From the NCBI GenBank assembly GCA_047495785.1, contig JBLDXI010000043.1:124001-188000 (forward strand): a stretch of 64,000 bases of DNA, written 5' to 3'. Below are positions 8,470-55,679 of this stretch, in pieces (within the stretch, counting starts at the first letter, position 1; each line of letters opens with the position of its first letter). The translations under genes and the position numbers were made by a program. Source of the stretch: Lepidodermella squamata (taxonomy: Eukaryota > Animalia > Gastrotricha). The notes below the pieces were generated by a model, which saw only the letters and a list, made by a program, of their open reading frames with translations, had not been told where the DNA came from and did not search any database.

Positions 8470-8481
8470 ATTTATTTGATC

Positions 8482-20325: not shown

Positions 20326-22603
20326 CACGTCAAGTTGCAAAATTTGAAGCACCCTAACATAGTCGCATGGTGCATTTGAAGGTTAGAGTACAGCTGACAA
20401 TATTTCCACTTAAATTCAACACTGTTCTAGGACCGTTACTTGAAATTAATGACAAGTACCAACATGGGAAAAAATGGCGCCTTGATGATGCGATGTACTA
20501 CCTCGGGATGGATTTTTATCCCGGCGGGGATTTGGAAGCTTACATGGAAAGAGTTAGCCAGGGGAATTTAGCTATCTCAGAAAATTCGCTTCGCTATTGA
20601 GCTCGACAACTGGTGTCTACCATAGCTTGCCTGCATAAATGTGGAGCACTTCATCGCGATATCAAGCCAAAGAATATTCTCCTGGGAGAAGATGGCAAAA
20701 CTGTTATTCTGGGCGACTTTGGTTTTGTTAAAATCTACTGCGAAGAGTATACATTTTCTGCTTCAGCGAGTTGAAATTGCCCCATTATTCTTCAGGTAAG
20801 GATTTATGTTTCTCAGAAAAAGAAAAAATTGGCTCTTGACTTATATGCAATATTGGGCAATCTATGTTTTTATTTGGCCCAAAAACATAACGGGGAACTT
20901 TTTGGTCGAATTAATTCTGGGCTGAAAATTTTCAATCGTTGCAAATCTAAATGAAATGAAAATAAGCACTAAATCAAATCAAACAAACAAAAGGATGGAC
21001 AGCCCTTTTTCGGATGCGGCTCAAATAATGTTGCCCTTCTGCTAAAGAAGCTCCGCGCCGCCTACATTTGACGATTGCCGCTGTTACTCCACTGAATTCC
21101 TCAACTTCATCCGCTCAATGCTAAAAGCGGACAGGCGATTGCGAGCTACTGCGAACGAATTGCATTTGAGTTCTTTTTGAGTCATGCAATTGCTGACGAT
21201 TTGTCCATGTCAACAGGAACTGCCAGCGATTGAATTTGGATGTAAACAGCAGAAACGAAGACGGCTTCACGCCACTTATGATAGCTACCCGAAACGGATT
21301 ACTCGGGCATATGAAGCTTTTGGTGGAGAAGTACAACGCTGATGTCGAAGTAGCGGACAATCTAGGCAGAACATGTCTGCACATCGCTACGAAGAATGGT
21401 CATGAAAACGTTGTGCAACTTCTCGCAAGAGATCTGGGCGCGAATGTCGATGCGGAGTCGAAAAATGGAGCAACGCCGCTATTCCTCGCCGCGAAAAATG
21501 GCCATTTTCAAATTGTTAAGCTTCTGGCTGGTGAATTTAAAGCCAATGTAAATGTAGCGACAACTGACGGAGTAACGCCTTTATACTTTATATATCGCTG
21601 CTGAAAATGGCCATCTGAGACCAAGAGATGTTAAGTACCGGATGCAGAGCTACTGATCTCCATAATACTTTTCTCGCGCCGTCGAACCATTTTTTGCAAT
21701 GCCAAAAATAGTAACATGTTCTATTTTTTAGCTTTAGCTTTACAGCAAATCACTATATATCGAAGATTTTGTTACTATTTTTAGCATTTGCAAAAAGTGG
21801 TTCTACGGCGCGAGAAAATTATTATGGAGGAGTCAGAAGTTCAGCATCCGGTACTTAACATCACTTGTCTGAGACTAGTCAAGCTTCTCGCGGGTGAGTA
21901 TAAGGCCGATGTGAATGTGAGCATCAACGACGGTTCAACGCCACTGTTTATCGCTGCTGCCTACGGCTACTTGAGAATAGTCAGGCTTCTCACGGAAGAA
22001 TTCAAAGCTGACGTGGAAAAACCTCATACCGTTGGTGCGACGCCGCTATGGATCGCGACACAGAATGGCCACTTGCGGGTTGTCAAGTTACTCGCTGGCG
22101 TTTACAAAGCTAACGTAAATGTTAGAATTAACGACGATTCAACACCACTGTTTATTGCTGCTGCCTACGATTACTTGGGGTTAGTGAAGTTGCTCGCGGG
22201 AGACTTCAAAGCCGATGTGAATGCAGTGAGGAATGACGGCGTCACGCCATTATTCGTTGCTGCTCACATGGGCCACTCGCGTATCGTAAAGATCCTGGCT
22301 GGGCGATTCGAGGCGCATGTTAATGCGGCGAGAAAAGATGGTGCCACGCCACTGTACGCTGCTGTTCAGCTGAGTCACTTGGATATAGTGAAGCTTCTCG
22401 TAGGGGGTTTTAAAGCTGACGTGAATGCAGCGATGAAGGACGGTGCTACACCATTATACGTCGCTGCTTTGAATGGGTACTTGGATATCGCAAAGCTTCT
22501 GGCAAGGGGCTCTAGAGCTGCCAAACGTTCAAGAGAGAATGATGGTACCACGCTTTCGAATGCCGATACCATGAAATACGCTCGAAAAACTCGAACATGT
22601 TGA
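20326..22603 (+). pseudogene. Kinase-ankyrin pseudogene (paralog 3)
   Basis: No first exon, in-frame TGA at 20598-20600 before [14 protein letters not shown] exon missing, frameshift near 21590 and a MITE inside the ankyrin exon. Confidence 0.8.
21622..21867. mobile_element. MITE with CAAG..CTTG termini and 8-bp TSD inside an ankyrin repeat
   Basis: TIR caagagatgttaagtaccggatgc / gcatccggtacttaacatcacttg; TSD tctgagac. Removal restores AAENGHLRLVKLLAGE. Confidence 0.88.
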
Positions 22604-23316: not shown

Positions 23317-24781
23317 GATATCGATGATTTTGCGCTAAAGCCGACCAACGAGAAAAAAATTCCAATACAGAGTACTGCGCACAATACGAAGTACTACGCG
23401 CGCATAATATTATAAGATATACTTATAGCCCGCATTCTGTGTGAAAAAAATGAATGTACTGGACAAATGACCAACAAATATAAGTGCGCTTTTGTGGATG
23501 TTACCATGAAATCTTCTGCTTACCTGGTAGAGAACTGTCGAAAGTATCAGGAAATCGATAGAAAAGCATGTGCAACCGTGGGTTATTCACCGCTAAGCGA
23601 CTTGAAAGTGATCTGAAAGCGCAAAAACCTTGGAAAAATGCACCCACTGGTGTCTTGAGTGGCGTTTCTGCGAAAACCAAAATGGGTTCACCCACAGTTT
23701 TTTCACATTCCCTAGCCGAGCACATGGAGGGCTTATTAGGGAAGTAAGAAATAGCCAGTTAATATGGAGGACATCCACGGCTTTTCAGTATTTTCCCTCC
23801 CGGCTTGAAAATCGTGGAAAAAGCGAAAATTGTATGTTTTTAGTCGCTCTTATCTCGAAAACACCCATGGTTGCACCATAGCTTTTTGTAGTCAAATAGG
23901 AGAAGGCACTAGGAGGTAGGTTTTAACAGGGAAAACAGCAAGAACCACCCCAACTTATCCTAGACTTTTTCGTCCTGATTAGCACTCACTACGTCACACC
24001 CAACACCTCGAAAATGCATGGCCTGGCGTCTTTTGGGGCATTGCTGCAAGAAAGAGCATGGGTTCAACCACAGTTTTTCACGTCCTTTAGTAGAGCACAA
24101 GAAGATCTTACTCAGGAAGTAAGAAATTGCCAGTAAATGCGGTGTTTATCCACGGGTTTAGAGTCTTTTCTCTCCACATCCGATTCAAGTCCGAATCGAA
24201 GAGAAAGTGAGGATTTTTCATCTTTCATGGCACTTATCTTGAAAAAACCCATGGTTGCACCATAAGTTTTTGTATTCAAACAATAGAGGAGATTGAGAAC
24301 AAGGTTTCAAAAGAGAAAACAGCACGAACCACGACAACTTATCCACGACTTTTTCGCCTTGATGGACAATCATGATGGGCAAATCATGGTAGCACCCGCA
24401 TATTTGCTATTTTATAAGAAGTATGCGCTCCATTCAACTTGTTACAGGTGAAATAAGGGCTCTGCCGCGTAAGGTAAGGTGAATAGCCCAGTTTTGAAGT
24501 TCGATTTTGAGCTTAAAATGTGATTGTCCATCAAGGCGAAAAAGTCGTGGATAAGTTGTCGTGGTTCGTGGTTCGTAAGCAGAAGATTTCATGGTAACAT
24601 CCACAAAAGCGCACTCATATTTGTTGGTCATTTGTCCAGTACATTCATTTTTTTCACACAGAATGCGGGCTATAAGTATATCTTATAATATTATGCGCGC
24701 GTAGTACTTCGTATTGTGCGCAGTACTCTGTATTGGAATTTTTTTCTCGTTGGTCGGCTTTAGCGCAAAATCATCGATATC
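23317..24781. mobile_element. Foldback/Mutator-like non-autonomous element with ~205-bp near-perfect TIRs
   Basis: 23317-23522 (gatatcgatgattttgcgctaaagccgacc...) is the reverse complement of ~24576-24781; internal diverged direct repeat (~23680-23980 vs ~24060-24360). No clean TSD. Confidence 0.75.
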
Positions 24782-24976: not shown

Positions 24977-25170
24977 ATAATACGCCGGAATAGGTGAATC
25001 ATTTTAGGCCTTTGTGCCAAGCAGAAGATGAGATAAGATAACATTTGAGAACTTCCGTAAAAAAATGCTGTGATCACAGCATTTTTTTACGGAAGTTCTC
25101 AAATGTTATCTTATCTCATCTTCTGCTTGGCACAAAGGCCTAAAATGATTCACCTATTCCGGCGTATTAT
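24977..25170. repeat. Perfect 194-bp spacerless palindrome
   Basis: 97-bp arms, centre ...gctgtga|tcacagc... between 25073 and 25074. Confidence 0.92.
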
Positions 25171-25362: not shown

Positions 25363-28247
25363 ATGGTCACAAGATTTGAATCGATTGATGAGTTCACCAA
25401 AATCAAGCGTCTGGGCAGCGGTGCTTTCGGATCGGTTTGGCAATGCAGGACTAACAACGACTTTGCCGACTACGCTGTTAAGGAGGTCAATCTAAGTGCG
25501 ATTCCTAGGATGTATCCCACGGACCAGGATATGGCTCGAAGACTTATCAATCTAAGCCGCGAAGAGGTTTCGTCATACATTCATTGCACAGCCCGGACGT
25601 AAATGTTTTCCATTTGTCTATCAGCACATCAAGTTGCAAAATTTGAGGCATCCTAACATTGTCGCAGTGCATGGTGCATTTGAAGGTTGGCAGTTGATGA
25701 GAATTCAGATTATTTTTTCAACAACAATTCCAGGACCTTTAAATGATATTGATGATACGAACCCACATAGGGACCAGTGGCTAATCGGTGATGCAATGTA
25801 CTACCTTGTGATGGATGTTTATCCCGGCGGGGATTTGGATGCTTATATCGAACGAGCTCAGCTGGAAAGTAGAGCTATTTCAGAAAATTTGCTTCGCGAT
25901 TGGTCTCAACAGCTAGTATCTGCCGTAGCTTGCCTGCATGCCTGTAGAGCCCTTCATCGCGATATCAAGCCAAAAAATATTCTACTGAGCGAAGATGGAA
26001 AAACTGTCAAGCTGGGTGATTTCGGATTCGTCAAAATCTATGGCGGGTATATACGTACTAAAGAGTTTAGCGGATGAAATTAGGATATGTCCGGTTCAAT
26101 TTCAGGTCTCCAAGCAGTACAACAATAGGACTGGGAACTAAGGAGTACGCTGCGCCTGAAATTTTTACCAATGTGCAGCACTCGCCGGCCAGTGATTGGT
26201 GGTCTCTTGGTGTCACTTTGCTAGAATTAGCTAATTGCCGCAGAACAGTATGCATATTTTTGTAATTAGTTAACTTGTAATTCTCATATCTTGCCATTTC
26301 AGACCACTCATGAAATTTTAGTGTAAGTTTGAAATCCCGCTTCACGAGCTAGCATGAGGATTATCCGCTTTTCTTAATTAGGCGTGGCGAGCATTTTAAA
26401 TTTTAACTGTTATTTATTTTTCCATAGGAGCTCTGAACCACCTAAATTTGACGAAAGCCGCAATTATTCGATGGAATTCCTCGACTTCATTCGATCAATG
26501 TTGGAAAAGGACATAAGATTGCGAGCTACTGCGAGCGACCTTATTTCCAGCTCTTTTTTAAATCGAAACCCAAATGTAATCGGATCGAACCATTCCCCGG
26601 CGATATCGACGGAATCTGCCGGCGATGAAATGAATCAGCAGGCCGATGTATTGACAGAAGACGGTGGGAATACACCCAGAGCCAACCCATTAGCTTCGGC
26701 TGTTCAAAATGAGTATGACTTCAATGAATTATTGATTTACTGATCAAGGATCTTTTAGCAGGTTGAGGTCTACTTTGAACGCGGATTCTAATCGCAGCGT
26801 TGATTTGCCAGTTCATACTTTTGAAGCAGAAGTTGACGATTCGCGAAGTGTAGGTTCAATGAGCACGGCGATGGATCAAAGATCAAGTCAGTGCGGAATA
26901 ATGTGAAATATGGCTTCTTCGATATTATTGTTATCTGGACATTGGAAGTTGGCTTATTCGTGAAGAAAAACGAAAACGAAGCACGTGTCACTAAAATTAG
27001 TTCCTATCTATCAGACTGTTTATTGTGATTAATATTCCAGGACATTCCAGGTTATCAGAAAATATCGCTACAAAAATAAATTGAATGCATAAATAATAAC
27101 GTATAATAGATATTTTCTGGAAAAATATCAAGGGATTTAACCCTTGCCAAAACTTTCATTCAGATTTTAGTGACATTTTCTATCTGAAACAATACTTACA
27201 GCCTTGATCAGCATCAATTTGGCCTTGTTTCTGGCCTCGTTATGTGCCTCGAATGGGAGAGAGGCTGTTCCCAATTGCACACTTCAGACTCGAGGTTTTA
27301 TTTCTATTTATGAAGTAATGAGTTGATGCAGTGAAAAAAACCACCATGTGTATTCCTATTGAAGGCAATATTCTGCAATGACCCATTCAGACCGGCTGAT
27401 CTGACTTTTTTGCTCCAGGTTATTCATTATGACACTCAAAAGAAACACGCAACCCCATTTGTCAGAATGGCAGAGAGAAAAGCATTGAATCAAATAATTC
27501 TCTGGCAATCAAAGCAACTTCTTATCAAATGCCAACGGCTGATCAAGAGCTCGTAATTTGCTTGATTTTCGAAATTATTGATTTTCACTTTTTCCCCAGG
27601 AATTTTTCGAAGCCTGCGCCCTAGGCGATGCGGATGTTGTTGGGCTTATGCTTTCTGGGCCTGCTGGTCAAAGCGATGCCTTGTCGCTGTTAGACGCAAG
27701 ATTCCACGAGGCACGGCATGGAAAAACAGAAATCTTAGACGAGGAATGGCAAAACAACGCTACGTGCCTCCATTTCGCATGTGTCCCAGTTACCGAGGTC
27801 ATTATCGAGCTGCTCCTCGCGACCAAACTACGTCTTGAATTGCAAAGGAGTGGCAATCAACGTGATAAAGCCATGGACAAACTGCGGCAGTTTGTAAATC
27901 GGCAGAATGGCGATGAATTAGCTGGGCTTTCCCCTCTTATGCTGGCGATAACCTGGGGCCATTTGCAATGCGCTAAGGCTCTTTGTGATTTCGCCTGTGA
28001 CGACGGAAAATCGACGCTAGCTGATATGAATTTGGTAGCAAGGGGGATGTATCGAGACAGAACAGCGCTACATTTTGCGGCGTACTGCGGCGAGGCAGCT
28101 ATGGTGGATCTTTTCCTTAATCGAGGCGCTGATCAAGTTAAGTTCGATGCGAATGGGCAGACGGCACTTCAAATCGCGGTTGAACACAAACGGCTGGAAG
28201 TTGTCAAGGTTTTCGAGAGATTTCCTAGTGGTGATAAAACAACTTGA
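25363..28247 (+). CDS. Multi-exon NEK-like kinase + linker exons + divergent ankyrin repeats (paralog 4)
   Basis: [21 protein letters not shown] and YAAPE with the same intron positions as the paralogs. Last exon has SPLMLAITWGH, TALHFAAYCG and TALQIAV. Linking the middle exons (26.7-27.6 kb) into one gene is tentative. Confidence 0.7.
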
Positions 28248-39667: not shown

Positions 39668-40357
39668 ATCTGACATATCCATCGCAAATCAATTTATAAA
39701 TATTCAAAGAGAAAGAAAATAATCAAAAACAGTTTCCAGCGCCTTCCGGGAATCGAAGGCATCTCAATCACAATATAGTTTGCTTCGCTTAGGCATTGGT
39801 TCGATTACTGCTCTCATCACGTTTTTCCTTTCCATTTTTTTTTCTTAAAACAGATTAATTCCTGTCCAAATTTTTGCAGAATGAGCAATAAAAGTGGAAA
39901 CTTTTCCATTCACGTGGATTTTCATGAGTACAAAGTGCATGCCTGTCATATGGCTGACACGCGATTCAGCATCAGCTGTTTAACGGCGCAGCGGCGGCAA
40001 CATAATAAGGTTCGATCGGGTATACACTAATCATTTAAAACGATTTATTTCTCCTGAAAACAACCTCTAATTCCTTAAGCATTAGAATTACTTATGCTGC
40101 CAGCTCCAATCAATCCATCTTTCGCTTGAATCGATAACAGTGTGACAATGCTGCTGTCTCAGGTTTGCTAGTATATTATTGCTAGTTCATTTCACTATTC
40201 CCACTGTGATTACAGCTACTGGATGAAATGGCGATTTGCAGTCGGCGTTGGTTTACCACGGTCACTAATTTCAACCAGAAAGCCGTGAGTACATTTTTTT
40301 CCTCATTGATTTTATTTACTATAGTAAATTTTATTGATTTTTTCATTCATAAACACA

Positions 40358-43002
40358 TTTTTACGCTCCCTAATATTTTCTTTTATCGTCATGCTCTCGT
40401 TCTCGGTGTTCTCGCGATCAGCAACGTCGATTCACCGAATCTCTGTCATTTAATTTTACCCTCATTAAATTTTTTCAAGAATTTTTTCAAACTTTGAAAT
40501 TCCAAACGAAGGTCGTAGGTTGGTGCCCGACTTCTCGTTTTTACGCTCCCTAATATTTTATTTTATCGTCATGCTCTCGTTCTCGGTGTTCTCGCGATCA
40601 GCAACGTCGATTCACCGAATCTCTGTCATTTAATTTTACCCTCATTAAATTTTTTCAAGAATTTTTTCAAACTTTGAAATTCCAAACGAAGGTCGTAGGT
40701 TGGTGCCCGACTTCTCGTTTTTACGCTCCCTAATATTTTATTTTATCGTCATGCTCTCGTTCTCGGTGTTCTCGCGATCAGCAACGTCGATTCACCGAAT
40801 CTCTGTCATTTAATTTTACCCTCATTAAATTTTTTCAAGAATTTTTTCAAACTTTGAAATTCCAAACGAAGGTCGTAGGTTGGTGCCCGACTTCTCGTTT
40901 TTACGCTCCCTAATATTTTATTTTATCGTCATGCTCTCGTTCTCGGTGTTCTCGCGATCAGCAACGTCGATTCACCGAATCTCTGTCATTTAATTTTACC
41001 CTCATTAAATTTTTTCAAGAATTTTTTCAAACTTTGAAATTCCAAACGAAGGTCGTAGGTTGGTGCCCGACTTCTCGTTTTTACGCTCCCTAATATTTTA
41101 TTTTATCGTCATGCTCTCGTTCTCGGTGTTCTCGCGATCAGCAACGTCGATTCACCGAATCTCTGTCATTTAATTTTACCCTGATTAAATTTTTTCAAGA
41201 ATTTTTTCAAACTTTGAAATTCCAAACGAAGGTCGTAGGTTGGTGCCCGACTTCTCGTTTTTACGCTCCCTAATATTTTATTTTATCGTCATGCTCTCGT
41301 TCTCGGTGTTCTCGCGATCAGCAACGTCGATTCACCGAATCTCTGTCATTTAATTTTACCCTCATTAAATTTTTTCAAGAATTTTTTCAAACTTTGAAAT
41401 TCCAAACGAAGGTCGTAGGTTGGTGCCCGACTTCTCGTTCGTTTTTACGCTCCCTAATATTTTATTTTATCGTCATGCTCTCGTTCTCGGTGTTCTCGCG
41501 ATCAGCAACGTCGATTCACCGAATCTCTGTCATTTAATTTTACCCTCATTAAATTTTTTCAAGAATTTTTTCAAACTTTGAAATTCCAAACGAAGGTCGT
41601 AGGTTGGTGCCCGACTTCTCGTTTTTACGCTCCCTAATATTTTATTTTATCGTCATGCTCTCGTTCTCGGTGTTCTCGCGATCAGCAACGTCGATTCACC
41701 GAATCTCTGTCATTTAATTTTACCCTCATTAAATTTTTTCAAGAATTTTTTCAAACTTTGAAATTCCAAACGAAGGTCGTAGGTTGGTGCCCGACTTCTC
41801 GTTTTTACGCTCCCTAATATTTTATTTTATCGTCATGCTCTCGTTCTCGGTGTTCTCGCGATCAGCAACGTCGATTCACCGAATCTCTGTCATTTAATTT
41901 TACCCTCATTAAATTTTTTCAAGAATTTTTTCAAACTTTGAAATTCCAAACGAAGGTCGTAGGTTGGTGCCCGACTTCTCGTTTTTACGCTCCCTAATAT
42001 TTTATTTTATCGTCATGCTCTCGTTCTCGGTGTTCTCGCGATCAGCAACGTCGATTCACCGAATCTCTGTCATTTAATTTTACCCTCATTAAATTTTTTC
42101 AAGAATTTTTTCAAACTTTGAAATTCCAAACGAAGGTCGTAGGTTGGTGCCCGACTTCTCGTTTTTACGCTCCCTAATATTTTATTTTATCGTCATGCTC
42201 TCGTTCTCGGTGTTCTCGCGATCAGCAACGTCGATTCACCGAATCTCTGTCATTTAATTTTACCCTCATTAAATTTTTTCAAGAATTTTTTCAAACTTTG
42301 AAATTCCAAACGAAGGTCGTAGGTTGGTGCCCGACTTCTCGTTTTTACGCTCCCTAATATTTTATTTTATCGTCATGCTCTCGTTCTCGGTGTTCTCGCG
42401 ATCAGCAACGTCGATTCACCGAATCTCTGTCATTTAATTTTACCCTGATTAAATTTTTTCAAGAATGTTTTCAAACTTTGAAATTCCAAACGAAGGTCGT
42501 AGGTTGGTGCCCGACTTCTCGTTTTTACGCTCCCTAATATTTTATTTTATCGTCATGCTCTCGTTCTCGGTGTTCTCGCGATCAGCAACGTCGATTCACC
42601 GAATCTCTGTCATTTAATTTTACCCTGATTAAATTTTTTCAAGAATTTTTTCAAACTTTGAAATTCCAAACGAAGGTCGTAGGTTGGTGCCCGACTTCTC
42701 GTTTTTACGCTCCCTAATATTTTCTTTTATCGTCATGCTCTCGTTCTCGGTGTTCTCGCGATCAGCAACGTCGATTCACCGAATCTCTGTCATTTAATTT
42801 TACCCTGATTAAATTTTTTCAAGAATTTTTTCAAACTTTGAAATTCCAAACGAAGGTCGTAGGTTGGTGCCCGACTTCTCGTTTTTACGCTCCCTAATAT
42901 TTTATTTTATCGTCATGCTCTCGTTCTCGGTGTTCTCGCGATCAGCAACGTCGATTCACCGAATCTCTGTCATTTAATTTTACCCTGATTAAATTTTTTC
43001 AA
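40358..43002 (+). repeat. Homogeneous 180-bp tandem satellite, ~14.7 copies
   Basis: Near-identical units (ttacgctccctaatatttt...aaggtcgtaggttggtgcccgacttctcgttt) with one 4-bp insertion near 41437 and a few substitutions. Confidence 0.97.
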
Positions 43003-43249: not shown

Positions 43250-46200
43250 ATGGTGAGACCGCCTAATTGGAAGCCAAAATCGAAGGGACCACGTAAATGT
43301 TCCTTTTGCAAACGGAAAGGTGTTCAAATCTCAACCCACTGCGGCCTAGTCAATTGCCCTAAAGCTAAAAGGCAACACCATCCCAAGCCATGCATTAAGG
43401 TTCAAGCTCCACCTTCTCAGTCCAATTGTATGTTTTCCTAATCAATGAGATATATATGTTTCATCTGTTTTTACACAGCCACGTCGTATTCGCATGCTGG
43501 CGAAGCTTTATCGGTAGCTCCATCTTCACTCGCGGTTCAGAATTCGTCTGAGCAGTCGTTGATATCTCAAGGCTTGTTCTTGTTATTCATCCTCAAATTG
43601 TATAAATTTGCGATCAAATTTCCCCATAGGTAGCGGCGCTGTTCTGACTGCTTCGGAGCAATTGTTGGCTTCTCAAGGTCAGTAATTTTTATTTCCCAAC
43701 TATAACTTGACATGTAGCTTTGCTGTTCCAGCTGTTCCGGCTACCCGGGAAGATCCGCTGCCACCTTCGGGTTAGTTGTGAGATTGAGATTTCTTTCATG
43801 TCTTGAGCGAATACCACTAAGCTATTTTAAGAATTATAAGAATTGAAGAGGTGTTAACATATGATTGTTATGCCATTCAGTCTTGTCAAATAATATCTTT
43901 TCAGGCGCTTCTTTGAACGATCGGCAGGAATCTAACGTTGGTGCACCTGGGCCACGTCAGCCAGTGAACAGTCAGCCATCTTGCCCCGTGTGCGGTGCGA
44001 AAGGAAGGAAGCTTATCACCCACTGTGACAAGGAAGAATGCCGCATTAGTGGCAGGGCACATCACGCCAATCCTTGTTTCCAGTTGCATCGACCTGGGCT
44101 CGAGGCAGGTGCAAATAATGAGCATCAAAGTAAGTATTATTTATCCACCTGATAGGATTTTTATAATAACTTTCTTGCTGTAGCAACCTCTCCAGCTATT
44201 GCAGTAACCTCGGAAAATTCGCTGCCATCTTTGGGTTAGCTATTTTATGTACTCATTTGGCTGCCAGGTGATAACTAATGAAACTGTTGTTTAAAGGTAG
44301 TGGCGATTCTTCTAGCACAGATGCGCCCATTCTGTGTGATTGCTGCCGAAGGATATCAGTACCCGATTTCGACATCGACATCACTCTTGTCGAACAGCCC
44401 GTAACTGGACGGAAATATGGCGCTCTTAACTCGCGGCTTGCGTACGAAAACTGCTCCTTATGTCGTTGCTGTCGGCGGTATTTGCGACAAAATAACGCTG
44501 GCTATGCTTCCGGCTGGCCAGCTCTTCTGTACAGCGTGTTCTTCGAAGCAGCAAATCGGCATGTCGCACAGGCCATGTCGAGGTGCATCTCGCCGCCAAT
44601 GAAGCTCATGTGGAGTGAGGTTGACGGGGCAAACATCTTGCGTGAATCAGACCCTTGGTTTGTGGACAAAACGCGCGAGCTTGCCGATTTCACGGCGAAT
44701 ATCTACAAAGATCCTGGTAATACTAAAGACTGAAATGAAAATGAACATGAAAAATTTCAATAACCTTATTTAATTTCAGGTGGATTCAGCTACGCGTTGA
44801 ATACCTACCCGGTGCCAGATGTGATTTGCCCTCAAGGTTGCTTGGCGTTCATGGAGAAATGCCAGCTAATTCCGTACCACCATTTCATCCAACATGTTAC
44901 TGGCAGCAATTTCTTCGATTCTGATTTGCGCTGGTTCGAGTCAAGGCGACCCGACTGGCCGTGCAACCCAGTGCCTTTCCTCGCTTGGGACTTCGCGGCT
45001 GCAATGGTCATGGACGAGACAAAGGGTCTGTGCATTCTTGCCTGCATTGACCACAGCAAGCAGGACCTCTTTTCTATGTACCTGCATCTGCCTGCGAATC
45101 CCGCATTCGACCGGCTTCAAGATCCTCAACAGACAGAAATTTATGCACCCGTGCACGTGCAGCCGAATTTCGTGAGAGGAGGGCGCGTCGGTCAGTCGAA
45201 CGCATCGGTGCCGGTGACGAAGACTGTCGGCGATCCGTTGGGTGTTGGTAGTTTTACCCTGCGTGGTGCCCACTCCGCAAACCGCAAGCCTCTCAGCATT
45301 TATGCCAGTGCCTTCAAACCCCACCTTCTGGCCTTGCGATACCGGCCCGACATTCGCAACACAGCAATCAGCAGATTCGGCGAGGAACACGTTGCGCATG
45401 TTCTTGCTGAATTTGATGAGCACTGCCCAACGGCTGTCGTCAGGAAACAGGTCAGAGGTGGCAGTTTCATCGAGCTTGCCGACTCCTATTTTACTTGGGC
45501 TGTGCGCCGCATAATCGCTACAGGTTAGCAAATCTTCTTTCCAATGTTGGTTCCAATGTTTTACATTTATATTGACTTTTTGCGGTATCTAAATTGTTCA
45601 AATCTTAATGAACTTGCTATTTTGTTTCAGGTACCGATTCGTCCAAAACAGTGAAAGCTCCCTCGGAAAAGCTGATCTTCAATCCGGTTCACCCGAATGA
45701 TGATCATGGCTTGATCCCTTGGGCATTCAAGTCGAGTCGAGGCGATAACCCTGCTCAGCTCCTCACACTGGTTGCCAACATCGTATCGTTGTGCCGCCCT
45801 GTGTACCGTGCGGCGTTGTCCCATCTGGTGCTTGGCAGTCCCGATTTAGCACGCGTCGACATCGGTGACTTGCTCAGTCATACAGTTTCGCTGCCGCGCC
45901 CGAAAACCCCTCGTACCCTGAATCTGGCGCACCTGGCAAGGGACTTCTGGGCACTGACCAACCCTGAGTCAGATGGCGATGGCGGATCTGACGATGACGA
46001 GGAATCCCCCGATGTCGTTATGCGGACATTAACTTTGATTGGGAGAGTTACTGCGCCGATTAATCATGCTGAGTTGTCCTTTGGTGGATCTGACCTTTTG
46101 GCGATTAGGAAGGGTCACATTTTGGACGGCGAAGGAAGGAGTCTTCGAAGTCATGGTGAGTATTTTACCCATATGTTAAACAGCTTTCAGTATTTAGTTA

Positions 46201-49200
46201 TTCATCTTACTAGTGTAATATTAGAAGCAAAATTTACGTTTTGAAGTTTGAAAAATCATCTAGAATTAATGACATAGATAATTAATATATATGTAGTACA
46301 TTTTGTTTTACAGTGGGCAGAGTGCTGGTCATCCACCAAGGTCAATCTCAGCTGCTGACCGAATTCCAGTCATCTCGTGAGCTGCTGATGTGCCGTCCTG
46401 AAGGTGCCTTGCCGATCCAATGGCCCGCATTGCCTTTGTCGCTGAAAGCTGGTCATCACCTTCTCCTTGCCCGCGTCAAGTTTCGCCGGAAATGCTTCAT
46501 CGTTTTTCGATGGTCACCAAGCTTCAGTGGCTGGTGGACAGTGGAGCCTAGTGGGCGAGTAGTTCGTGGTGTCAGCGGTCAGCACATGCGCTTTGACGTG
46601 GAATTTGCGATATACGCTCTGCCTGGCAACCAGACCTTCTGCAATCAAGCCGTGCGTCAATCGCTGGGTGGCCAGAGCAAGGCGGCCTGCGAAATGCACT
46701 ATGACTCCGTCGAGTTCAACTTCACCTTGATGAAAGTGCCTGCCAAGCATAAGGTGAAGTGTTGCTTCCGATTGCCGGGAAGAGCAAATCAGTGCGGCAA
46801 ACCTGCTCAATTGCGTTGTCCTGCGGGCTTGCAGAATGGCAGCATGTCGTGCAGTGTCGGCATCTGCCCGCGGTGCTTCAAAAAGCTTTCAGCGAACGGC
46901 ATCACCAAGCTCTCGGCGCCCGACTTCCTGCCTGATTTGCCTGAAGATGCTGAACTGCAACTGTCAGCTAGTAGGGTATCGAACTTGGAAGCGGAAGCCG
47001 ATGAGGTCTTGCCCCAGCCTGAGCAGCTCGATTTGGCTGCTGATATTCAATTTCCTCGAGGTGAAGTCGAGCCGCTGTATGATCCCACCAAGGGAATTCT
47101 CGCCAAGTACCTATGGCAGCACCTGGGAATTCTGCAGCGAACCAGGCTGGCTTTCGACTCTGCCCAGAAGTCGTTTCTCCTGCAGCAGATGGTCGCCTTC
47201 GGTGATGCCCCTGCTACTTCCATCTTGTATCCGGAGGGTGCCCTGTTTCCGTCGCTTTTCTATTGCCAACGTGATGGCAGTGTTGTTGGTGCTCTGCCTC
47301 ACCACCACTACTCGTCGTCGACGTCCTACAATACAGGTGGGATCGGCTCACTGTCTGACCATGTCAAAGTGAGGCTTCGCAACTTCTTCTTGGCAACAAG
47401 CTGGTCGTTTGCGTCAATCTACTTCTCCTTTGACATGAAGTTATCGGCACAGCTGAACAGCAACAGCACAGCAATTTTCATGAAGCGCGGGACAGAAGGC
47501 CTGGCGGGTAAAGGCGCGGTTGGCTGGTCTCCTCCTGGCACTGTACTGGAATACGAGGAGTTCGACAAGGAGTCGAGGCTGAAGGAGCTTGGCGCCCTAA
47601 TCAAGCATGAAGAATGGAAGTGGTTCGGGACAATTACGTGCAATGATACAGGTTTGAAGAAATGTTTATAGTATTTTAGCAAATAAGTAGTATCCTGCAT
47701 ACTTCGATTAGGTAGCAATAAGGTGGTAAGCAATTTTTAAACCAAAGTTTTTGAAAGTTTTAAATTTTAGATCAGGGTCCTGGGTTCGAACCCAAGCTCT
47801 CATTTCTTGGCTCTCTAATTTTTTCTTTCATTCTCATGCTTGCGTTCTCGGCGAATTCTTCATCGGGGATTTTATTTGTAGCTGGAATAATTTTAAAACT
47901 AATTTAGGGGGAACTTTGAACTTTTAGATCAGGGTCCTGGATTCGAACTTAAGCTATCGTTTCTTGGCTCTTGGGTCCTGGGTTCGAATTCGAACACAAG
48001 CTTAATGCAAAATTTCTATTTTCAGGCACACCTGGTGTATGTGAAATCGTGAAGGCCCTCATGATCAACGCTCAAAGGCACCATGGCCCACGCCCCGTTC
48101 TGTCGAAGGCCGACTATCAGCGAACTTTTCGTCAGCGTCTGCTCCTTGTTTCAAGGCTTGACGAGACCGAGTACAAGCGGCTGTACTACGCCCATTTCAT
48201 CCTTATCAGCATGGCTTGGCAACGAGTGCAGGAGCATCTGATCGAGTTCCTGAAGCGCACGAATGTTGTTGGCACTGTCACCACTATTTTCGTCAGGAAC
48301 GAATTTCAGAGCGAATCACTCGTTGGCAACAAAAGTCATCTGCATATGGGCATTTCAGTACGCGAAAGCCGGGCAGAACTGCTGGAGAAAGTTTGCTGTG
48401 ATCCTCGTGAATTCTTCTCGGAGCGGTACGGCACGTCATTCGACGAGCTTCAGCGCTTGAGGTTGGTCGAGAGCCGAGATCACTTCGAGCTGCTCAAGGA
48501 GGTCCATTACCCCTTCCAACGTCACGAATGCGAGAAAGCGTTTTGGAAATGTCAAGTTCCACGCGGCGAAGGAGGGGAAATGGTTTGCCGAGTTCGCCAG
48601 CACGGCGTCTCCAGCAGCGGCTATTTCGAAGAATTCCGCAACCTGTACTCCGAGGATACCCTGAAAGAGCTGCAATCCCTAGACCTCGCCAGAGAAGTGC
48701 CCAATCCCACTGGCGACTTTGACTGGGAATTTCTGGCTGATCAGCTCAAGTCGGGCGTGTACCACTACGCGATCAAGCATCTCGAGAAGGGCGTGAAGTT
48801 CATTCCGCAAATCCCGATCATCGCGGCAATGATGGGCGGCTCCACGAACTTTCAGATTTGCGATTCTCATTTCAGCGTATCTTACCTGACGAGCTACGTT
48901 GCCAGCTCCGACGCTCGCCCTGAAGCTTACGCTGCAACGACAGATGTTCCGGGCCAAGTCGTTGCTTTGTTCCCTGCTGGTTTTGAGCGAGGTCAAAAGC
49001 TTGCTAGTGTTCGGTGAGTGATATCTTTGCACTTCAATTGACTTGAAAAACTTTGATGTTTTTAGGAAAGTGATGGAAGCGAAGCTGAAGCATTTCCGTC
49101 GAGAAAGCATGCAGAGCTTTATCTTCATCGCCTTGACAGAAGTTGCCTGGTTCGCGTTGGGGTTTCCCTACACCATCACGAATGTCGGTTTCGTACACAT

Positions 49201-52200
49201 CAACACACACCCACCAGCTTTGCGGCTAATGTTGTGGCGACCAAAAGAAGCAGTGAAAAAGCGACTACCGGGTATGCTCTTGAGAATAGTTATTGTAAAT
49301 ATTTTCAAATAATATTCCAAAAACAGGTACAGATGTCGTTGCTGTCGATCCAAACTACAATCGCCGGGGCCTGCCTCAGTGGCGCTTGTTCACGGAAGCA
49401 TGCATTCGTCTGATCATGAAAATGAGAGGCACGAATCTGCAAGCTGGCCCTGTCGAGAAGTTCGAGATTCGACCTCCCGAGGCTCGTATCTTTGCGTCAC
49501 CTGCTATCTACCACGCGGTGTTCGTCATTGACAGGAAAAACGGACGACCATACAACCCGATGGTTGATCCTTACATCCGTTTTTTTGACGGCTTCAAGCG
49601 GGAGGTCCGAATCAACGATTGCAGTTTGCGCATCGCGCTCGACTATCTGGCTCAGCAGGACCAATCCAATCCAGCTGTTCAAGCACTCACGGAAATTTTC
49701 GAACTCTTGGTCGAAGGCGATCCTGTCTACGTTGACCGGTAACGAACTTTACGTTTTTATAATTTTCGGAATATTTCAATTGTACGCTGAACTAGGTATT
49801 TGCACGTCACCAATAAGGCGGCGATAATTCCAGTCCTATCCACCATCTCTCCGCTCAACCGCTTCAACTTCTTGTATCACGTCGTCATGACATTTGGTCG
49901 AATCGAAGAAGAGGCTACTACCTTTCCGGCTGGGCATCTCCGGGCGGCATTTGTTCGATCGGGGCTCATTCGGGTCAATCCTGAAGGCGAGCCGACCAAC
50001 CTTCCTGCCGACGTGAGGTCTCTGAAGCGTCGCGTCATTCTCGAAATCTTCGCTTTCCTGCCAATCGGTGTCAAGAGATTCGATTTCTACGTCGCGACTC
50101 TGAAATCCATGTTCGAGCAGTTTTTCTTTGGCGATGGAGGCACCGACAATCTCTCGACACTGACTGACTGGGAAGCGATTGAACGCGAAGTTGACGAGGA
50201 TATTGTCCGAGCGGAAGGAGAAATGAAGCGGTCTGTGGTTGAGGTGACGCATTCGCAGCTTGTCGGGAAATTGCCGCTACCACCGCTGTCGGATTTCACT
50301 GACGCTACGTCGTGTCAACCTTTGGAATGGGTTCCGAGTCTTCAACGACAACCAGGTCAGTCGGACCAGTCTTTCCAGGAGCAGCAGGCGGCTCTGGCTT
50401 TCGGTACGAAGACACTCGAACGCTTCCGAAGCAGAGCTAGCTTCAAGCACATCGCACTGGTTGGTCCTCCTGGGGCTGGAAAGACAACGCTGGCGCAGAT
50501 CCTTGCCATGGTTGCCGTTTCTAAGGGACTACGAGTTGTCATTACTGCTTTGACCTCGGAGCGAGCACGAGTTCTTGGCGGTCGGCACATCCACCTGCTT
50601 TTTCCTTTGCCGGTTAAGCAAATACCGTACAAGAATGTAATGGCGTATGCTGACGGCTGCCTCAAGAATCTGTGTTTCAAGACTACGCCATCTGTTGTCC
50701 TATATCGGGCTGACGTCTTCATCATCGAAGAAATTGGGCTGGTCTCTGCTGAAACCCTGGAAATCTTGGACACAGTTATGAGGAGTCTTACAGGTAAGCA
50801 AACCAGCATTCAATTATTACTGGTATTTATAGTTTTCATTAGGAGTCGATGCGAAAATGGGTGGCAAATTGATCATTGCTACCGGGGACTTTGCTCAGCT
50901 CGAGACGATCAATGGTGAGAGTTGATTTATTGCAATACTCACATGTATATTGTTTTTGTTTTAATTATCCCAGGTCGATCCTTTTGGGAATCAACACAAT
51001 TGTACCTCAGCTACGACGTCGCATTGTTGAAACATTTCGTTCGGGCTGCCACTGACCCGCTACTCCAGCGGGTGCTGTTGATTTTGCGCCAAGCCATTCT
51101 TGACGAGATTGACCGGGACTTCATCCTCAAAGCTGTCACTAGCACGTGCACCTTTTACGACACTTGGGACAATGTTCCGTTCCTTGTCCAGCGGATCGTC
51201 CCAACAAGAGAAGCTGAACAAGAGGTTAGTTAGTTGCGGAAAACTTTAGTGGTCAATTTTAGTGCCTTTCATGCAATAATTCATCAGGTCATTCGGAAGT
51301 TCCTGCAAGACGCTAGTCTCAGTGGCAAGACTTTGAAAACAGCTCTGTGCATCGACGAAGTGAACACGCGTGGTGCCTGGGAACCTCTTCACCGTCCCGA
51401 ATGGAAAAAAGCTATCAACAAACAGTCACTCAAGCCCGAGAACTTAACCCTCTTTGTTGGTGCTGTGGTTGCTATGACCTACAATCACGTAGCGTCGAAC
51501 CCGCAACATTCCTTCTCCCAAGGGCAGCTAGCTCTGGTGACGCAGTTGCCGGAAGACATGGCCGCACCGGATGCCAAAATTTCTGTCCGCTTGCTTCCTC
51601 CAGGGCTGCGTGACATTGCACCAGATGAGGCTTGGCCAGAAATAAGTGTGGGCCGCCATCGGGACGATAACATTGTTGTTGGCGACAACAAAACGCACCT
51701 GCGTCGTGTTCAGTTTCCGCTGCGGCATTACATTGCCTCGACTATTCATCGTGAGTGCTAACCTTGTTTTTATATTCAAGTATATAAAGATGTTAATTGT
51801 TTTCAGGAATCATGGGTTCTACCTGCGAGAACGGCGTTGCGGCCAAGATTGCTTCCAACCAGAAGGTACGTATTGCGAATAATAACTGTGGATATTGATA
51901 TGTTCAATGTACTGTAATGAAGGGCTACGTGCTATGGGAACGGGCGCAGCTTGCTGTCATTCTCTCGCGGTGCCGTTCACTTGACCGTGTGTCATTTGTT
52001 GGCGAACGCGCAGACATCACTGTGGCCATCGAAAGGCTGTTGATGGCAGTTGATGAGCCATACGAGGCTATCGTCGCATCGCTGCAAACGCTGGACGTGC
52101 TGCCTAACTCAACAGTCGCCAGTAACTGGTCAGCCGGACGACAGCAGCAGGTCAGCGTCCCCGACGAACTGCCCGACATCACGTTCCGCGTTTTACGAAC

Positions 52201-53058
52201 AACTTCCGGGTTAGTCCACTTACTTATTTGGCGCTTTGTATAGTCAACTCACTGATTGCGTATGTCCCATTATATATAGAGTCTTGACAGTTCATATTTC
52301 TATAACCATTTTACTATATTTCAACTTAGAATAAGTCGAACGTTTTCAAGAAACATTTTTCTTATAGATCATTCACGATCGAGCAGCTTGGCGATGCTCA
52401 AACTTCCATCCCATTGTAAGTATGGCATTGTTCATCTGCTTTATATACTATTCAAAATTTCTTCATAGGCCTGCAACCGCTGACCAGGCAAGCTCCTCCG
52501 ATGCGCCTGTTGTCCCACGGTTAGTATAACCTATCAATTCCTTTTCATTGCTTCAAATTCTTCTCAACTCATCAGAATGCCGACATTGCTAGACTTTTAC
52601 CGCGTCGTTGGCCCTGATTTGTCGGAACGCGAGCCCAATGGCTTCGTGTACCAATTGGTCCAGGTGGCTCAGCCGTGGGTCAGCTACTGCGGCGAAACTG
52701 AGCAACCGCCTCTAAAGCGACTTTACGACCACAATCACAGTAAATACAAGAGAGACTAAAAAAATCGAACTGCTAACATTTGATTTCAGATGCAGGGGCC
52801 GCGATGACTCGCGGCAAGCAATGGCATTTGTACGCCGTCGCTCGTGGCTTGCCTGATGACGAAACCAGGTTGAACCTGGAGAAAAGGTGCCAGGACCTTA
52901 TTACAGCGCAACCTGAGCTTTTGCCGTGGCAAGTTAGGACCAAGTTTGAGTCCTACGTGGACGAAATCAACGCTCGCCTGCATGGGTCCACTGCTGTAAT
53001 TCGTTACGGCGAGTTAGACGAGGCTAAGGTTCACCGCCTGCGTACGATCTCCTTGTGA
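43250..53058 (+). CDS. Multi-exon (~23) Helitron-like Rep-helicase with N-terminal Zn fingers and a C-terminal GIY-YIG endonuclease, roughly 2,600 aa
   Basis: Rep motif 1 WFGTITCN (~47620), motif 2 RNEFQ...KSHLHMG (~48295-48350), motif 3 SYLTSYV (~48880). PIF1 motifs GPPGAGKT, FIIEEIG, GGKLIIATGDFAQL, FVRAATD, QFPL...STIHRIMGST, AQLAVILSR. GIY-YIG motifs GFVYQL..SYCGET..KRLYDHN..GAAMTRGKQW..LNLEK. Confidence 0.85.
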
Positions 53059-53409
53059 GTCAGCTGATGGATGTCATTCTTTTTACTCAATCCTTTCACT
53101 TTTCAGCACGTCGACAATTAGAGTAGCACCGGCGCCACCGTCAGCGCATGAAGAAGCAGGTGAACTAATCGACCAAGATCCGCCCCCAAAGCGGTAAATA
53201 GATTTAAGTTCACATTTGCTTGTAGCTTTTTACTATTATTTTCAGAATTCATCTCGCAAATAATTGTTCGCCGTCTTGATGTTTCTGCTGATCTTCCGAT
53301 AAATGAAATGTTCCAATTCAATGTTTTTCCTAGTAGTAGCCAATAAACGTATTGCACTTTTTCTAATAGTGTTTATTGAATCAGAGTTATCAGATCGACA
53401 TGACTTAAT

Positions 53410-53632
53410 ATGAATCAAATCGCCTCGAAACCGTAATTTTTCTGATCCTTGTGCTTCGTCCATTATATAATTTTTCTAAAAGATTACCTAAGCTGATTGC
53501 CATGCTACGCCAAGGCGACGCCGTTAAAGTGAGGCAATCGGTTGTTGACGATGCGAAATACATACCCGTCACACTGCATGAAGCCATCGACAGGAGCAAC
53601 GAGGATGCACCTGGGAATTTCAAGTGTGTCGC
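53410..53632 (+). pseudogene. 5'-only duplicate of the accessory gene
   Basis: Near-identical to 55683-55905 (LPKLIAMLRQG...NFKCVA), then breaks off. Confidence 0.75.
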
Positions 53633-53699
53633 TTTGGGTTGGTTATTTTATTCAATAATTGTGCTGCCTGGTGTTAACTAAAACTTCTGTTTTTTGCAG

Positions 53700-53920
53700 C
53701 TAGTGGTGGTTCTTCTGATGCACCTATTCTATGTGACAACTGCAGAAGACGATCGGTGCCCTTTTTCGACATCGACATTGCTGTCGTCGAAGAGCCGGTA
53801 TCTGGACGCAGCTATGGTGCTCTAGCAGTGCGACAAGTCTACGAAAACTGCTCTCTGTGCCGTTGTTGTCGTCACTATTTGCGGAACGGCGATGCTCGAT
53901 ACTCGCCGCAAAATCACGAC
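53700..53920 (+). pseudogene. Diverged duplicate of a Rep-helicase Cys-rich exon
   Basis: DAPILCDNCRR...FDIDIAVVEEPVSGRSYGAL...YENCSLCRCCR matches ~44297-44510. Confidence 0.75.
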
Positions 53921-54348
53921 AGGTCAGTAAATTTCATTCATATTGTACTACTATAGATTAGACTAGCCAGAATTAGCACTGCACTGATTTGCTATCCCCT
54001 TGACCTTACTTTGAAACTTCAATTTTTCACAAAACTCTTCAAAAACATTGAGCAAAGTACAATTGAATGTCTGGGAATAGTTGAATCCATGTTCCTGATG
54101 AGGATAACGCTGAGAACGAGAGCATACGGATGAAAGAATTCGTTGAAGAGCAGTTTGACGAGAGCTAGGAACGAACCCTTAACCTTGCTGAGAGATTTCA
54201 AATTTTTGGAAAATCTTGTAAAAAACTAACCAAAACTAAGATTACGGTAACGCCGAGAATTAGAGGATATTGAAGCTTCACTTTGCTGGAAGTTTGTTTA
54301 AAACAAACGATCCTTTAAGCTTTCAGCTCGTTTGCTGCGATGTCGTTA

Positions 54349-54605
54349 TCACGATTCCGGAATAAAATAGGGAACACACCGAGAGAAAAACGAGTCGTCT
54401 ACAAGCGCTTTTTGACAAGACAAGTTAATTACCAGAATAATAGATACAGTCGGCCAACCGTAACCATTACCAGTGATTGTGGTACCGCTGAAGGGCTCTG
54501 CAGACGAAATTACCGTGTATTTTGCATCGTCTTCCACCAGCTCTTCCACTTTGTCAACTCTGCCCTGTTTCAGCAAGGCTGCGAGTTTTGAAATCCTTGA
54601 AAATG
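54349..54605 (-). pseudogene. Decayed 5' fragment of an accessory-gene paralog
   Basis: RISKLAALLKQGRVDKVEELVEDDAKYTVIS resembles RLPKLIAMLRQGDPVKVRQAVVDDAKYIPVT. Confidence 0.6.
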
Positions 54606-55156
54606 CCGGTTTTCCAAAATATTGAATTGGCCATGAATTACTCTGGGCACGTGGGCGGCATTATTTAGCGATATGTAGTGTAGTTCGGGAGAATGAGATT
54701 GGAAAGTTTTCACGCTTGACAAAACGTCGTGTGGATTACATTCAAATCCGAAGAAGATAACCGGATTTTGTTTATCGAGTTTATCGAGTTTATCGGGTTT
54801 CTCTCTGAGCCAACAACAAAGGAAATGCGCAGGATCTCATTCGAATTGATTACGGGAGCAATTCTGGTAGATTGATGAGGCAACATGAATCATTTTCCTG
54901 CTTTACATATGTTCGTAGAAACATGAATGGTAGAGAATGCCAATCAGCGTCGCGCAGCTCTAAACTTCTAAGCTTCCAACTTCTAACTTTCAAGCTCCGT
55001 GACTTCAAGATAACTCAATATATGTAGCAGAACTTCGTCTGGAAGGTTTTCAGTGAAGCATCAGTAGAGCTCACGTGTTTGAATGCAGATGATTTCATAA
55101 GGCCGATCGAACTGCTTCAAATTCCCAATATAGTATTCTTTATTTCTTTATTTTAG

Positions 55157-55432
55157 GTACCGATTCGTCGAAAAAAGGGAAATCACCTTCAGAAGGCCTC
55201 ATCTTCAATCCGGTTCACCCGAACGATGATCATGGCTTCATCCCTTGGGCAAGTCGTGTCGCCCCGTGTACCGTGCGGCGTTGTCTCTTCTGGTACTTGG
55301 CAGCCCCGATTTGTCACGCGTCGACATCGGTGACTTGCTCAGTCATACAGTGTCGCTGCCCCGCACGAGATGCCACGTAGCCTGAATCTGCCACACCTAG
55401 CTAACGACTTCTGGGCACTGACAAACCCCGAG
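55157..55432 (+). pseudogene. Diverged duplicate of another Rep-helicase exon
   Basis: gtaccgattcgtc...ttcaatccggttcacccgaa...gacttctgggcactgac matches ~45631-45967 with an internal deletion. Confidence 0.75.
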
Positions 55433-55679
55433 TAAGGCGGTAAGTTGTAAAAATTGAACATTTGCTTGCAACTTTTTACCAATTTTTCAGAATTCATCTC
55501 GCCAACAATTGTTCGCCGTCGTAACATTCCGGGTGGTATTTTCTAACACTGAACTATCTTCTGCTAGAAATAAAGTTGAATTTTTGTCTTCAATTAACGT
55601 TTTTCTTGAAATAAGCAATAAACATTTTTTTTAAATAGTGTTCAATAAATTTAGTTTTGTCACTAAGAGTTCAGTTAAC

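Follow-up and report, generated by a model that had tools for sequence, protein, structure and literature searches.

A Predicted Helitron-Like Transposase Ending in an SLX1-Type GIY-YIG Domain in the Gastrotrich Lepidodermella squamata

We analyzed a stretch of 64,000 nucleotides (nt) from Lepidodermella squamata (Gastrotricha), corresponding to positions 124,001 to 188,000 of the forward strand of contig JBLDXI010000043.1 in assembly GCA_047495785.1; this whole stretch is called the window here, and coordinates are those of the window. The segment from ∼44.2 to 53.4 kb very probably represents a single multi-exon gene; its product, a giant transposase that belongs to a divergent Helitron-like (rolling-circle) transposon, ends in a GIY-YIG nuclease domain of the SLX1 type. 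The parts in all likelihood follow one another as Cys-rich and unknown N-terminal domains, an HUH/two-tyrosine Rep, a PIF1-like helicase, a linker, the SLX1-type GIY-YIG domain, and a short basic tail. The flexible linker between helicase and nuclease comprises 33 residues in two micro-exons, and the GIY-YIG domain is split by one 50-nt intron.

Relatives were collected by an exhaustive phmmer search with the helicase open reading frame (ORF; 49800 to 50915). The Rep regions of 29 relatives make up alignment A3, and the C-terminal domains of 48 relatives, with the window left out, make up alignment A2. Contigs of three public runs (X1, X2, and X3) were aligned to positions 48000 to 53600. The parts of the gene are as follows (+, forward strand; i-E, independent E value).

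44278..44733 (+): Cys-rich N-terminal exon N1, given as ORF bounds with splice sites not resolved; 8 relatives matched in their N-terminal region at i-E of <1e-3, order kept
44797..45528 (+): conserved N-terminal exon N2 (ORF), no assigned function and no match in a Pfam search; 25 relatives at i-E of <1e-3, best 1e-32
45651..46244 (+): poorly conserved exon N3 (ORF); matched solely by the window's second copy, with 87% identity at 55180 to 55373
46313..47671 (+): front of the Rep domain, an ORF ending in Rep motif 1 (FGTITCN); 68 relatives at i-E of <1e-3
47971..49017 (+): HUH Rep endonuclease exon with EFQ..GNKSHLH and SYLTSY; hhalign match to Rep profile A3
49386..49742 (+): exon between Rep and helicase (ORF); matches relatives between their Rep and helicase regions
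49800..50914 (+): N-terminal half of the PIF1-like helicase with the P-loop (ORF); Pfam AAA_30 at 3e-8 and PIF1 at 6e-5; the final ∼40 codons may be intron
50974..51224 (+): helicase exon; relatives matched in order, joint 51224/51288 in transcript contigs
51288..51750 (+): helicase exon ending ..ASTIH; joints 51224/51288 and 51750/51807 (GT..AG) in X1 and X3 contigs
51807..51865 (+): helicase micro-exon of 20 codons; joints 51750/51807 and 51865/51923, frame kept by phase count
51923..52209 (+): last helicase exon (..LAVILSRCRSL..); 44 relatives at i-E of <1e-3, joined to linkers and exon A in X3 record 19
52368..52415 (+): linker micro-exon 1, SFTIEQLGDAQTSIP; joints 52209/52368 and 52415/52469
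52469..52519 (+): linker micro-exon 2, PATADQASSSDAPVVP; joints 52415/52469 and 52519/52576
52576..52739 (+): GIY-YIG exon A with GFVY, SYCG, Arg, and His-Asn; hhalign match to A2, joint 52739/52790
52790..53054 (+): GIY-YIG exon B with GA..T, QW, GL, the predicted catalytic Glu (LEK), and the helical extension; hhalign match to A2, X3 record 20
53107..53193 (+): tail exon (..DQDPPPK), possibly with a nuclear signal in its basic end; GT..AG at both joints, 53054/53107 and 53193/53246
53246..53279 (+): last coding exon with the real stop, TGA at 53277 to 53279; transcript joint and frame
53630..55450 (+): 5' fragment of a second copy; tblastn and DNA similarity

In 37 full-length relatives, matches to the exon peptides of the window occur in an unchanged order that extends from the N-terminal exons across Rep to the helicase. 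By eye, small exons with two apparent Cys/His knuckles (..CSFCKRKG..THC.. and ..CPVCGAKG..THC..) were noticed at 43250 to 44130, ahead of the first conserved ORF; the 5' end of the transposase gene may in fact lie in these exons.

Splicing of the helicase and nuclease exons

Exon A begins at 52576, after an AG acceptor, and not at the ATG at 52577; its frame (52577 to 52738) reads MPTLLDFYRVVGPDLSEREPNGFVYQLVQVAQPWVSYCGETEQPPLKRLYDHNH, including ..NGFVYQLVQVAQPWVSYCGETEQPPLKRLYDHNH. A GT-AG intron of 50 nt (52740 to 52789) divides the domain between HN and GA, and exon B, the frame of which (52792 to 53053) reads AGAAMTRGKQWHLYAVARGLPDDETRLNLEKR.., is joined to exon A in frame through one shared codon, AAT. 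Along the exon chain from 51288 to 53279, all introns are GT-AG and 50 to 158 nt long, and the frame is open throughout. An in-frame TGA at 53056 to 53058 is removed by splicing of 53054 to 53107; since the contigs also splice 53193 to 53246, the frame ends at the TGA at 53277 to 53279 and closes with ..PPPKRIHLANNCSPS before the stop. An AATAAA lies at 53342 to 53347, and the transcript contigs extend to about 53347.

Run X2 is genomic-like: one of its contigs, 2,801 nt long, keeps the introns from 49815 to 52619. Intron-less contigs were found in X1 and X3, with joints at 51224/51288, 51750/51807, 51865/51923, 52209/52368, 52415/52469, 52519/52576, 52739/52790, 53054/53107, and 53193/53246, all at the predicted places. 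One X3 contig (record 19, 496 nt) connects the last helicase exon, by way of the linkers, with exon A, and another (record 20, 432 nt) links the end of exon A to exon B and both tail exons. Because such contigs bridge the helicase, the linkers, exons A and B, and the tail, we conclude that the GIY-YIG exons and the helicase exons are carried on one spliced mRNA.

A separate observation concerns exon A itself. In single transcript contigs, its letters between 52578 and 52704 differ from the window at 14 of 127 positions (10 of 89 in X1), while the flanking exons differ at 0 to 2; the two differences listed, at 52609 and 52612, are both synonymous. The excess may reflect exchange between copies.

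An earlier sequence-only reading of this DNA had placed a GIY-YIG endonuclease at 52577 to 53058 and fused it, through short low-complexity linker exons, to the C terminus of a helicase. The exons do lie there, and the motifs that it quoted (GFVY, SYCG, KRL, HN, and LEK) are present, with the Tyr/Arg/His/Glu pattern falling into the conserved columns of the family; its boundaries needed correction, as the start is 52576 rather than 52577, a 50-nt intron interrupts the domain, and the TGA at 53056 is spliced out. There are two linker exons (52368 to 52415 and 52469 to 52519), both with a high content of Ser, Thr, Ala, and Pro; they preserve the frame and occur in transcript contigs. The fusion likewise withstood examination, given the frame-keeping GT-AG introns, the bridging intron-less contigs, and relatives encoded in one ORF. 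Separate transcription of the nuclease exons, the outcome that would have spoken against it, did not occur: the X1 and X3 joints link the last helicase exon through exon B.

Domain identity and relatives

The phmmer search returned 561 proteins at an E value of ≤1e-3 and 330 at ≤1e-10, many of them 1,600 to 3,600 residues long. Among the first ten C termini scanned, seven match PF01541 (five above the gathering score), and in a local jackhmmer search, 82 of 151 proteins proved to have a C-terminal domain of ∼140 residues. The domain is present in 72 of the 73 relatives that are long enough to reach its position; counted from the position that corresponds to residue 330 of the helicase query, its start lies 340 to 407 residues (median, 366) farther on. 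As nearly all of these long-tailed relatives carry it, the fusion is old and lineage-wide, with constant spacing behind the helicase, and not an event at one locus. Two relatives, P0023 and P0033, each pass the Pfam cutoffs for Helitron_like_N, PIF1, and GIY-YIG together. Relative P0029, which also contains an OTU protease, is encoded in a single uninterrupted 8.4-kb ORF on a metagenome contig; the fusion is therefore independent of any splice model. Named species among the sources are the ostracod Cyprideis torosa, with an unnamed protein, and the tunicate Styela clava and the hagfish Myxine glutinosa, with uncharacterized proteins. The remaining relatives are proteins from metagenomes or raw assemblies, some of which bear the IMG label "predicted GIY-YIG superfamily endonuclease." Scans of metagenome and viral contigs with back-translated patterns of the helicase ORF yielded no confirmed relative.

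The nearly invariant columns of A2 are the Pro of LP, GxVY and a Ser after it, YIG, R..HN, the Pro of RPW, the Gly of GF, and the Glu and Trp of FExxW. Against this profile, exon A scores a probability of 94.8% by hhalign (E value, 5.6e-8; columns 25 to 57) and exon B 64% (E value, 6.6e-5; columns 70 to 141); the two hits lie in domain order, with the intron located in the gap that separates them. A local hmmsearch among 12 exon peptides gave 7e-7 for exon A and 1e-4 for exon B, and weak phmmer matches of exon A fall exactly on the Pfam GIY-YIG hits of relatives. PF01541 is matched by 46 of the 48 A2 members. In a protein-language-model search with exon A, which we treat as a lead only, 15 of the 20 nearest named clusters belong to the PF01541 GIY-YIG set, with scores of 0.90 to 0.91. 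A word-indexed homologue search, subject to the length window and word limits of the tool, found no candidate for exon B and one unrelated bacterial ATPase for the helicase ORF.

Within the GIY-YIG superfamily, the profile points to SLX1. A2 matches the SLX1 crystal structures 4xlg, 7wme (At-HIGLE), 7cq2, 6seh, and 7cq4 at 4.7e-15 to 2e-12 and bacterial UPF0213 proteins at 7e-6; I-TevI and UvrC chains are not reached in the same search. An AlphaFold2 model of the P0003 domain, made with A2, has a mean predicted local distance difference test score (pLDDT) of 85.5. Its top 11 Foldseek matches in the PDB are all SLX1 entries with a probability of 1.00, and VIA-align superimposes it on SLX1 over 107 to 118 residues with Z scores of 9.4 to 11.0 and root mean square deviations of 2.5 to 3.6 Å; the next fold has a Z score of 5.9, and UvrC has 3.0. 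These comparisons support the assignment of a GIY-YIG domain of SLX1 type, and on profile and fold alike the nuclease domain is homologous to that of SLX1. A domain of the I-TevI, UvrC, or Penelope type was considered and rejected, as the A2 profile misses I-TevI and UvrC and the UvrC fold scores 3.0.

The window copy retains Gly and Tyr (GFVY), Tyr and Gly (SYCG), Arg (KRL), His, Asn, Gly, and Glu (LEK) in the conserved columns of the family, in which Tyr, Tyr, Arg, His, Asn, and Glu each reach 90% conservation or more across relatives. Because every predicted catalytic residue is kept, this copy is taken to be active. No RING or PHD finger was found after the nuclease domain in the window, where the tail of 40 residues has one Cys and two His. 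In the relatives, the protein mostly ends within 20 residues past the GIY-YIG domain, and the SLX1 RING finger is absent throughout. Lacking this finger, the protein is SLX1-like in the nuclease module only and is not an SLX1 orthologue.

Alignment A3 contains the blocks TYFxTxTCN, EFQ..GN.PHxH, and YLxKY. Twenty-five of its 29 members match PF14214 (Helitron_like_N) at an E value of ≤0.01, some of them above the cutoff; the relatives score 20 to 33 bits and match the second half of the model only. Both catalytic blocks are matched when the A3 profile is compared with the Helraiser transposase (7lcc; E value, 7.5e-4). The window Rep ORF (47971 to 49014) aligns to A3 with an hhalign probability of 100 and an E value of 7e-41: its SHLH lies on the HUH motif (PHxH, which is invariant in the 29 relatives) and on the HUH block of Helraiser, and its SYLTSY aligns with YLxKY, both tyrosines being kept and Lys being replaced by Ser. 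The FGTITCN at the end of the preceding ORF (46313..47671) aligns with the TYFxTxTCN block. Taken singly, the window ORFs have no Pfam match to PF14214. Against the PDB, the helicase ORF matches Helraiser at 7e-4 and PIF1 helicases at 8e-4; it is a PIF1-like SF1B helicase by these matches and is placed C terminal to Rep. Together, these results support a divergent Helitron-type HUH/two-tyrosine Rep and PIF1-like helicase as the predicted upstream part of the protein.

Both halves of the earlier proposal, an SLX1-like GIY-YIG nuclease and a Helitron-type Rep-helicase upstream of it, are thus borne out, the one by the A2 matches and P0003 fold described above and the other by the A3 match and the AAA_30 and PIF1 Pfam matches. 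The search for Rep, PIF1, and GIY-YIG in one architecture succeeded with P0023 and P0033. The PF01541 check came out positive by an indirect route: single exons of the window have no Pfam match, but nearly all A2 relatives do, and the exons match the profile of these relatives. A failure of profile and structure searches to give any GIY-YIG match, the second outcome named as speaking against the proposal, did not occur. As for the suggested independent capture of a nuclease, the domain is indeed distinct from the apurinic/apyrimidinic (AP) endonuclease of Helentrons; the capture is ancient and lineage-wide and did not take place at this locus.

Genomic surroundings of the gene

The G+C content is 0.50 at 44 to 52 kb versus ∼0.40 in the flanks. 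A 5' fragment of a second copy lies head to tail at 53.63 to 55.45 kb, starting ∼350 nt past the stop of the first gene. By tblastn, it includes an N1-like part at 53678 to 53905 (66% amino acid identity) and an N3-like part at 55180 to 55441 (62 to 87%); DNA similarity starts near 53630. Around the ends of the first copy (42.9 to 43.4 and 53.2 to 53.8 kb), a search for terminal hairpins and inverted repeats gave only weak AT-rich repeats of 8 to 10 nt near 53.2 to 53.4 kb. The two contigs with relative P0029 represent the same locus, and no boundaries were gained from them.

Some X2 contigs of the genomic type skip 48354 to 50119, 52934 to 53047, or 53062 to 53239, at about one-tenth of the word depth of the full-length form. 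This pattern suggests internally deleted derivative copies in the X2 genome.

Just upstream of the transposase gene, at 40355 to 43000, a 180-nt satellite is present in ∼14 tandem copies that are 99 to 100% identical. Degenerate copies occur at 30.7 to 39 kb, 47732 to 47971, 53997 to 54169 (inverted), and 59.8 to 60.7 kb, two of them within a transposase intron, and all copies carry a GGTTCGAACCC block that resembles a tRNA B-box. The satellites may be nonautonomous partners of the element.

Farther upstream, perfect 207-nt inverted repeats lie 1,051 nt apart (23317 to 24781) and are adjoined by a perfect spacerless palindrome of 97 + 97 nt (24977 to 25170); the repeats and the palindrome may belong to a small element bounded by terminal inverted repeats or may have arisen in assembly. 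Other ORFs of the window encode ankyrin repeats in 102-nt (34-residue) units (4285 to 6579, 18384 to 19196, 21788 to 22603, and 27648 to 28247) and a 931-residue protein with a dynamin-family GTPase domain (8428 to 11223).

Alternatives, proposed function, and known systems

Several points weigh against a Helitron-like transposase with a working SLX1-type domain at this locus. Searches of the single window exons in Pfam and NCBIfam gave no match, and phmmer comparison of each exon and the Rep ORF with PDB sequences gave chance matches only. The domain assignment rests on a profile made from relatives, to which exon B by itself matches with a probability of 64%, and the fold comparison concerns a model of relative P0003, the window copy having been examined exon by exon. 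This copy is changed at four near-invariant noncatalytic sites: Ser to Gln after GxVY, Pro to Gln in RPW, GF to GL, and Trp to Arg in FExxW. That X1 and X3 are RNA runs is only guessed by the index; relative to the window, their contigs show 0 to 11% difference (for example, Val for Met at 52577) and may derive from sister copies or another strain, and no single contig spans the whole gene or the distance from Rep to the nuclease. Finally, the termini and target site of the element were not found in the window, which holds one and a half copies.

The four altered positions could mark the domain of the window copy as a decaying or noncatalytic remnant, perhaps a DNA-binding module, even if the domain of the family is active; the failure of Pfam to see the single exons and the 14 of 127 letters at which exon A differs from the window in one contig, compared with 0 to 2 in the neighboring exons, point the same way. 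We consider a remnant unlikely, however: the frame is open, four nearby introns are spliced, Tyr/Tyr/Arg/His/Asn/Glu are kept, and the listed differences at 52609 and 52612 are synonymous. Somewhat less probable still is an immobile host gene domesticated from a Helitron-like transposase, with a nuclease that serves cellular repair or defense. In favor of it, the gene is long, intact, and intron bearing with apparent transcripts, and no terminal or target-site signature was found at the locus; on the other hand, a second copy lies directly downstream as a 5' fragment, X2 genomic contigs include internally deleted versions, and the G+C content of the element is unlike that of its flanks.

Helitrons are known as gene capturers, and an SLX1-like domain could betray host SLX1 exons recently captured by the window element alone. 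Since the domain occupies the same place across the lineage (72 of 73 relatives, with ostracod, tunicate, and hagfish proteins and many metagenome contigs among them), we rejected a recent local capture, which also fits poorly with the absence of the SLX1 RING finger everywhere and to which we assign a very small probability. We give as little credence to a chance resemblance of motifs or a separate small gene downstream of the helicase. While it is true that neither exon gives a direct database match, the profile E values of 5.6e-8 and 6.6e-5 come in domain order, exon A sits exactly on the PF01541 hit of relatives, and contigs bridge helicase and domain; the bridging contigs and the profile matches of exons A and B led us to reject both explanations.

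We therefore return to a transposase with a nuclease tail. In Helraiser, single-stranded DNA is cleaved at the ends of the element by the HUH Rep, which remains covalently linked to the 5' end, and unwinding of the strand falls to the 5'-3' helicase. The transposase described here may likewise use its HUH Rep to cut and covalently hold single-stranded element ends and its helicase to peel off the strand; the tethered GIY-YIG domain would nick duplex or branched DNA, which the single-strand-specific Rep cannot do. Our preferred role for the domain, proposed with reserve, is that it might open the target or donor duplex for the helicase and Rep, a job that has been assumed for the AP endonuclease of Helentrons (PMC11417382). 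Trimming of flap or fork intermediates left by strand transfer is a possible alternative role but appears less probable. Both the RING finger and SLX4 are missing here, so control would have to come from the rest of the transposase. SLX1 itself is restrained through these two.

In the current view, Helitrons move by an HUH nuclease alone, one that requires single-stranded DNA, and the opening of the donor or target duplex is an open point; to our knowledge, the Helentron AP endonuclease is the sole accessory nuclease usually discussed. A lineage-wide SLX1-type nuclease with conserved catalytic residues points to a required second cut, for which HUH, helicase, and GIY-YIG in one polypeptide would be a compact, testable system. 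Such a protein would also suggest that the SLX1 nuclease module can work without the RING finger and the SLX4 partner. The family may escape current Helitron annotation because the window exons score below Pfam thresholds. More speculatively, these elements could form a deep, unnamed third Helitron-like lineage in marine animals, in which a constant SLX1-type nuclease replaces the AP endonuclease and in which a preference for branched DNA leads to insertion at the ends of relatives and hence to head-to-tail copies.

Among known systems, Helentrons (HLE2) resemble the window element in having a giant Rep-helicase transposase with an extra endonuclease behind a PIF1-type helicase. HLE2 elements may carry an OTU protease, as relative P0029 does, and DUF6570 has been named as an HLE2 marker (PMC11417382). 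Unlike in Helentrons, the nuclease of the window element is an SLX1-type GIY-YIG and not Exo_endo_phos, and the Rep is very divergent. Pfam searches found no Exo_endo_phos (AP endonuclease) match in the window or in the C-terminal or full sequences of 18 relatives and no DUF6570 in the window or in eight full-length relatives. Helraiser and canonical Helitrons (HLE1) share with the window element the HUH motif, the tyrosine pair, and the PIF1-like SF1B helicase in the same order but lack the extra C-terminal nuclease and the N-terminal domains that add ∼1,000 residues; the sequences are only weakly similar (E value, ∼1e-3), and termini of the 5'-TC/CTRR-3' type of HLE1 were not identified at the window element.

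With SLX1 and At-HIGLE, the family profile and P0003 model share a signature (GxVY, YIG, R..HN, G.GA..T, RPW, GF, and FE..W) and the fold, including the helical extension. In contrast to SLX1, in which the C-terminal RING/PHD finger binds SLX4 and controls activity, the domain lacks such a finger and forms the end of a transposase; at most, it functions in the manner of SLX1, of which it is not an orthologue. A GIY-YIG domain besides RepHel has been reported for HelenSM92, an HLE2 family of Sphagnum magellanicum, in one sentence of the HELIANO paper, as a captured domain (PMC11417382). In full-text literature (subscription papers and Repbase lie outside this search), that sentence alone mentions Helitrons and GIY-YIG together, and none was found that ties Helitrons to SLX1. 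HelenSM92, which we compare by description only, is one moss family, whereas the lineage described here is animal and metagenomic and its domain is constant; the fusion is common to many unnamed relatives in animals and metagenomes and is barely mentioned in print. Penelope-like elements and GIY-YIG homing endonucleases are also mobile elements that use a GIY-YIG nuclease. Theirs, however, belongs to another GIY-YIG subfamily, and their mobility enzyme is a reverse transcriptase or none, as opposed to the HUH Rep and helicase with which the SLX1-type domain is combined here.

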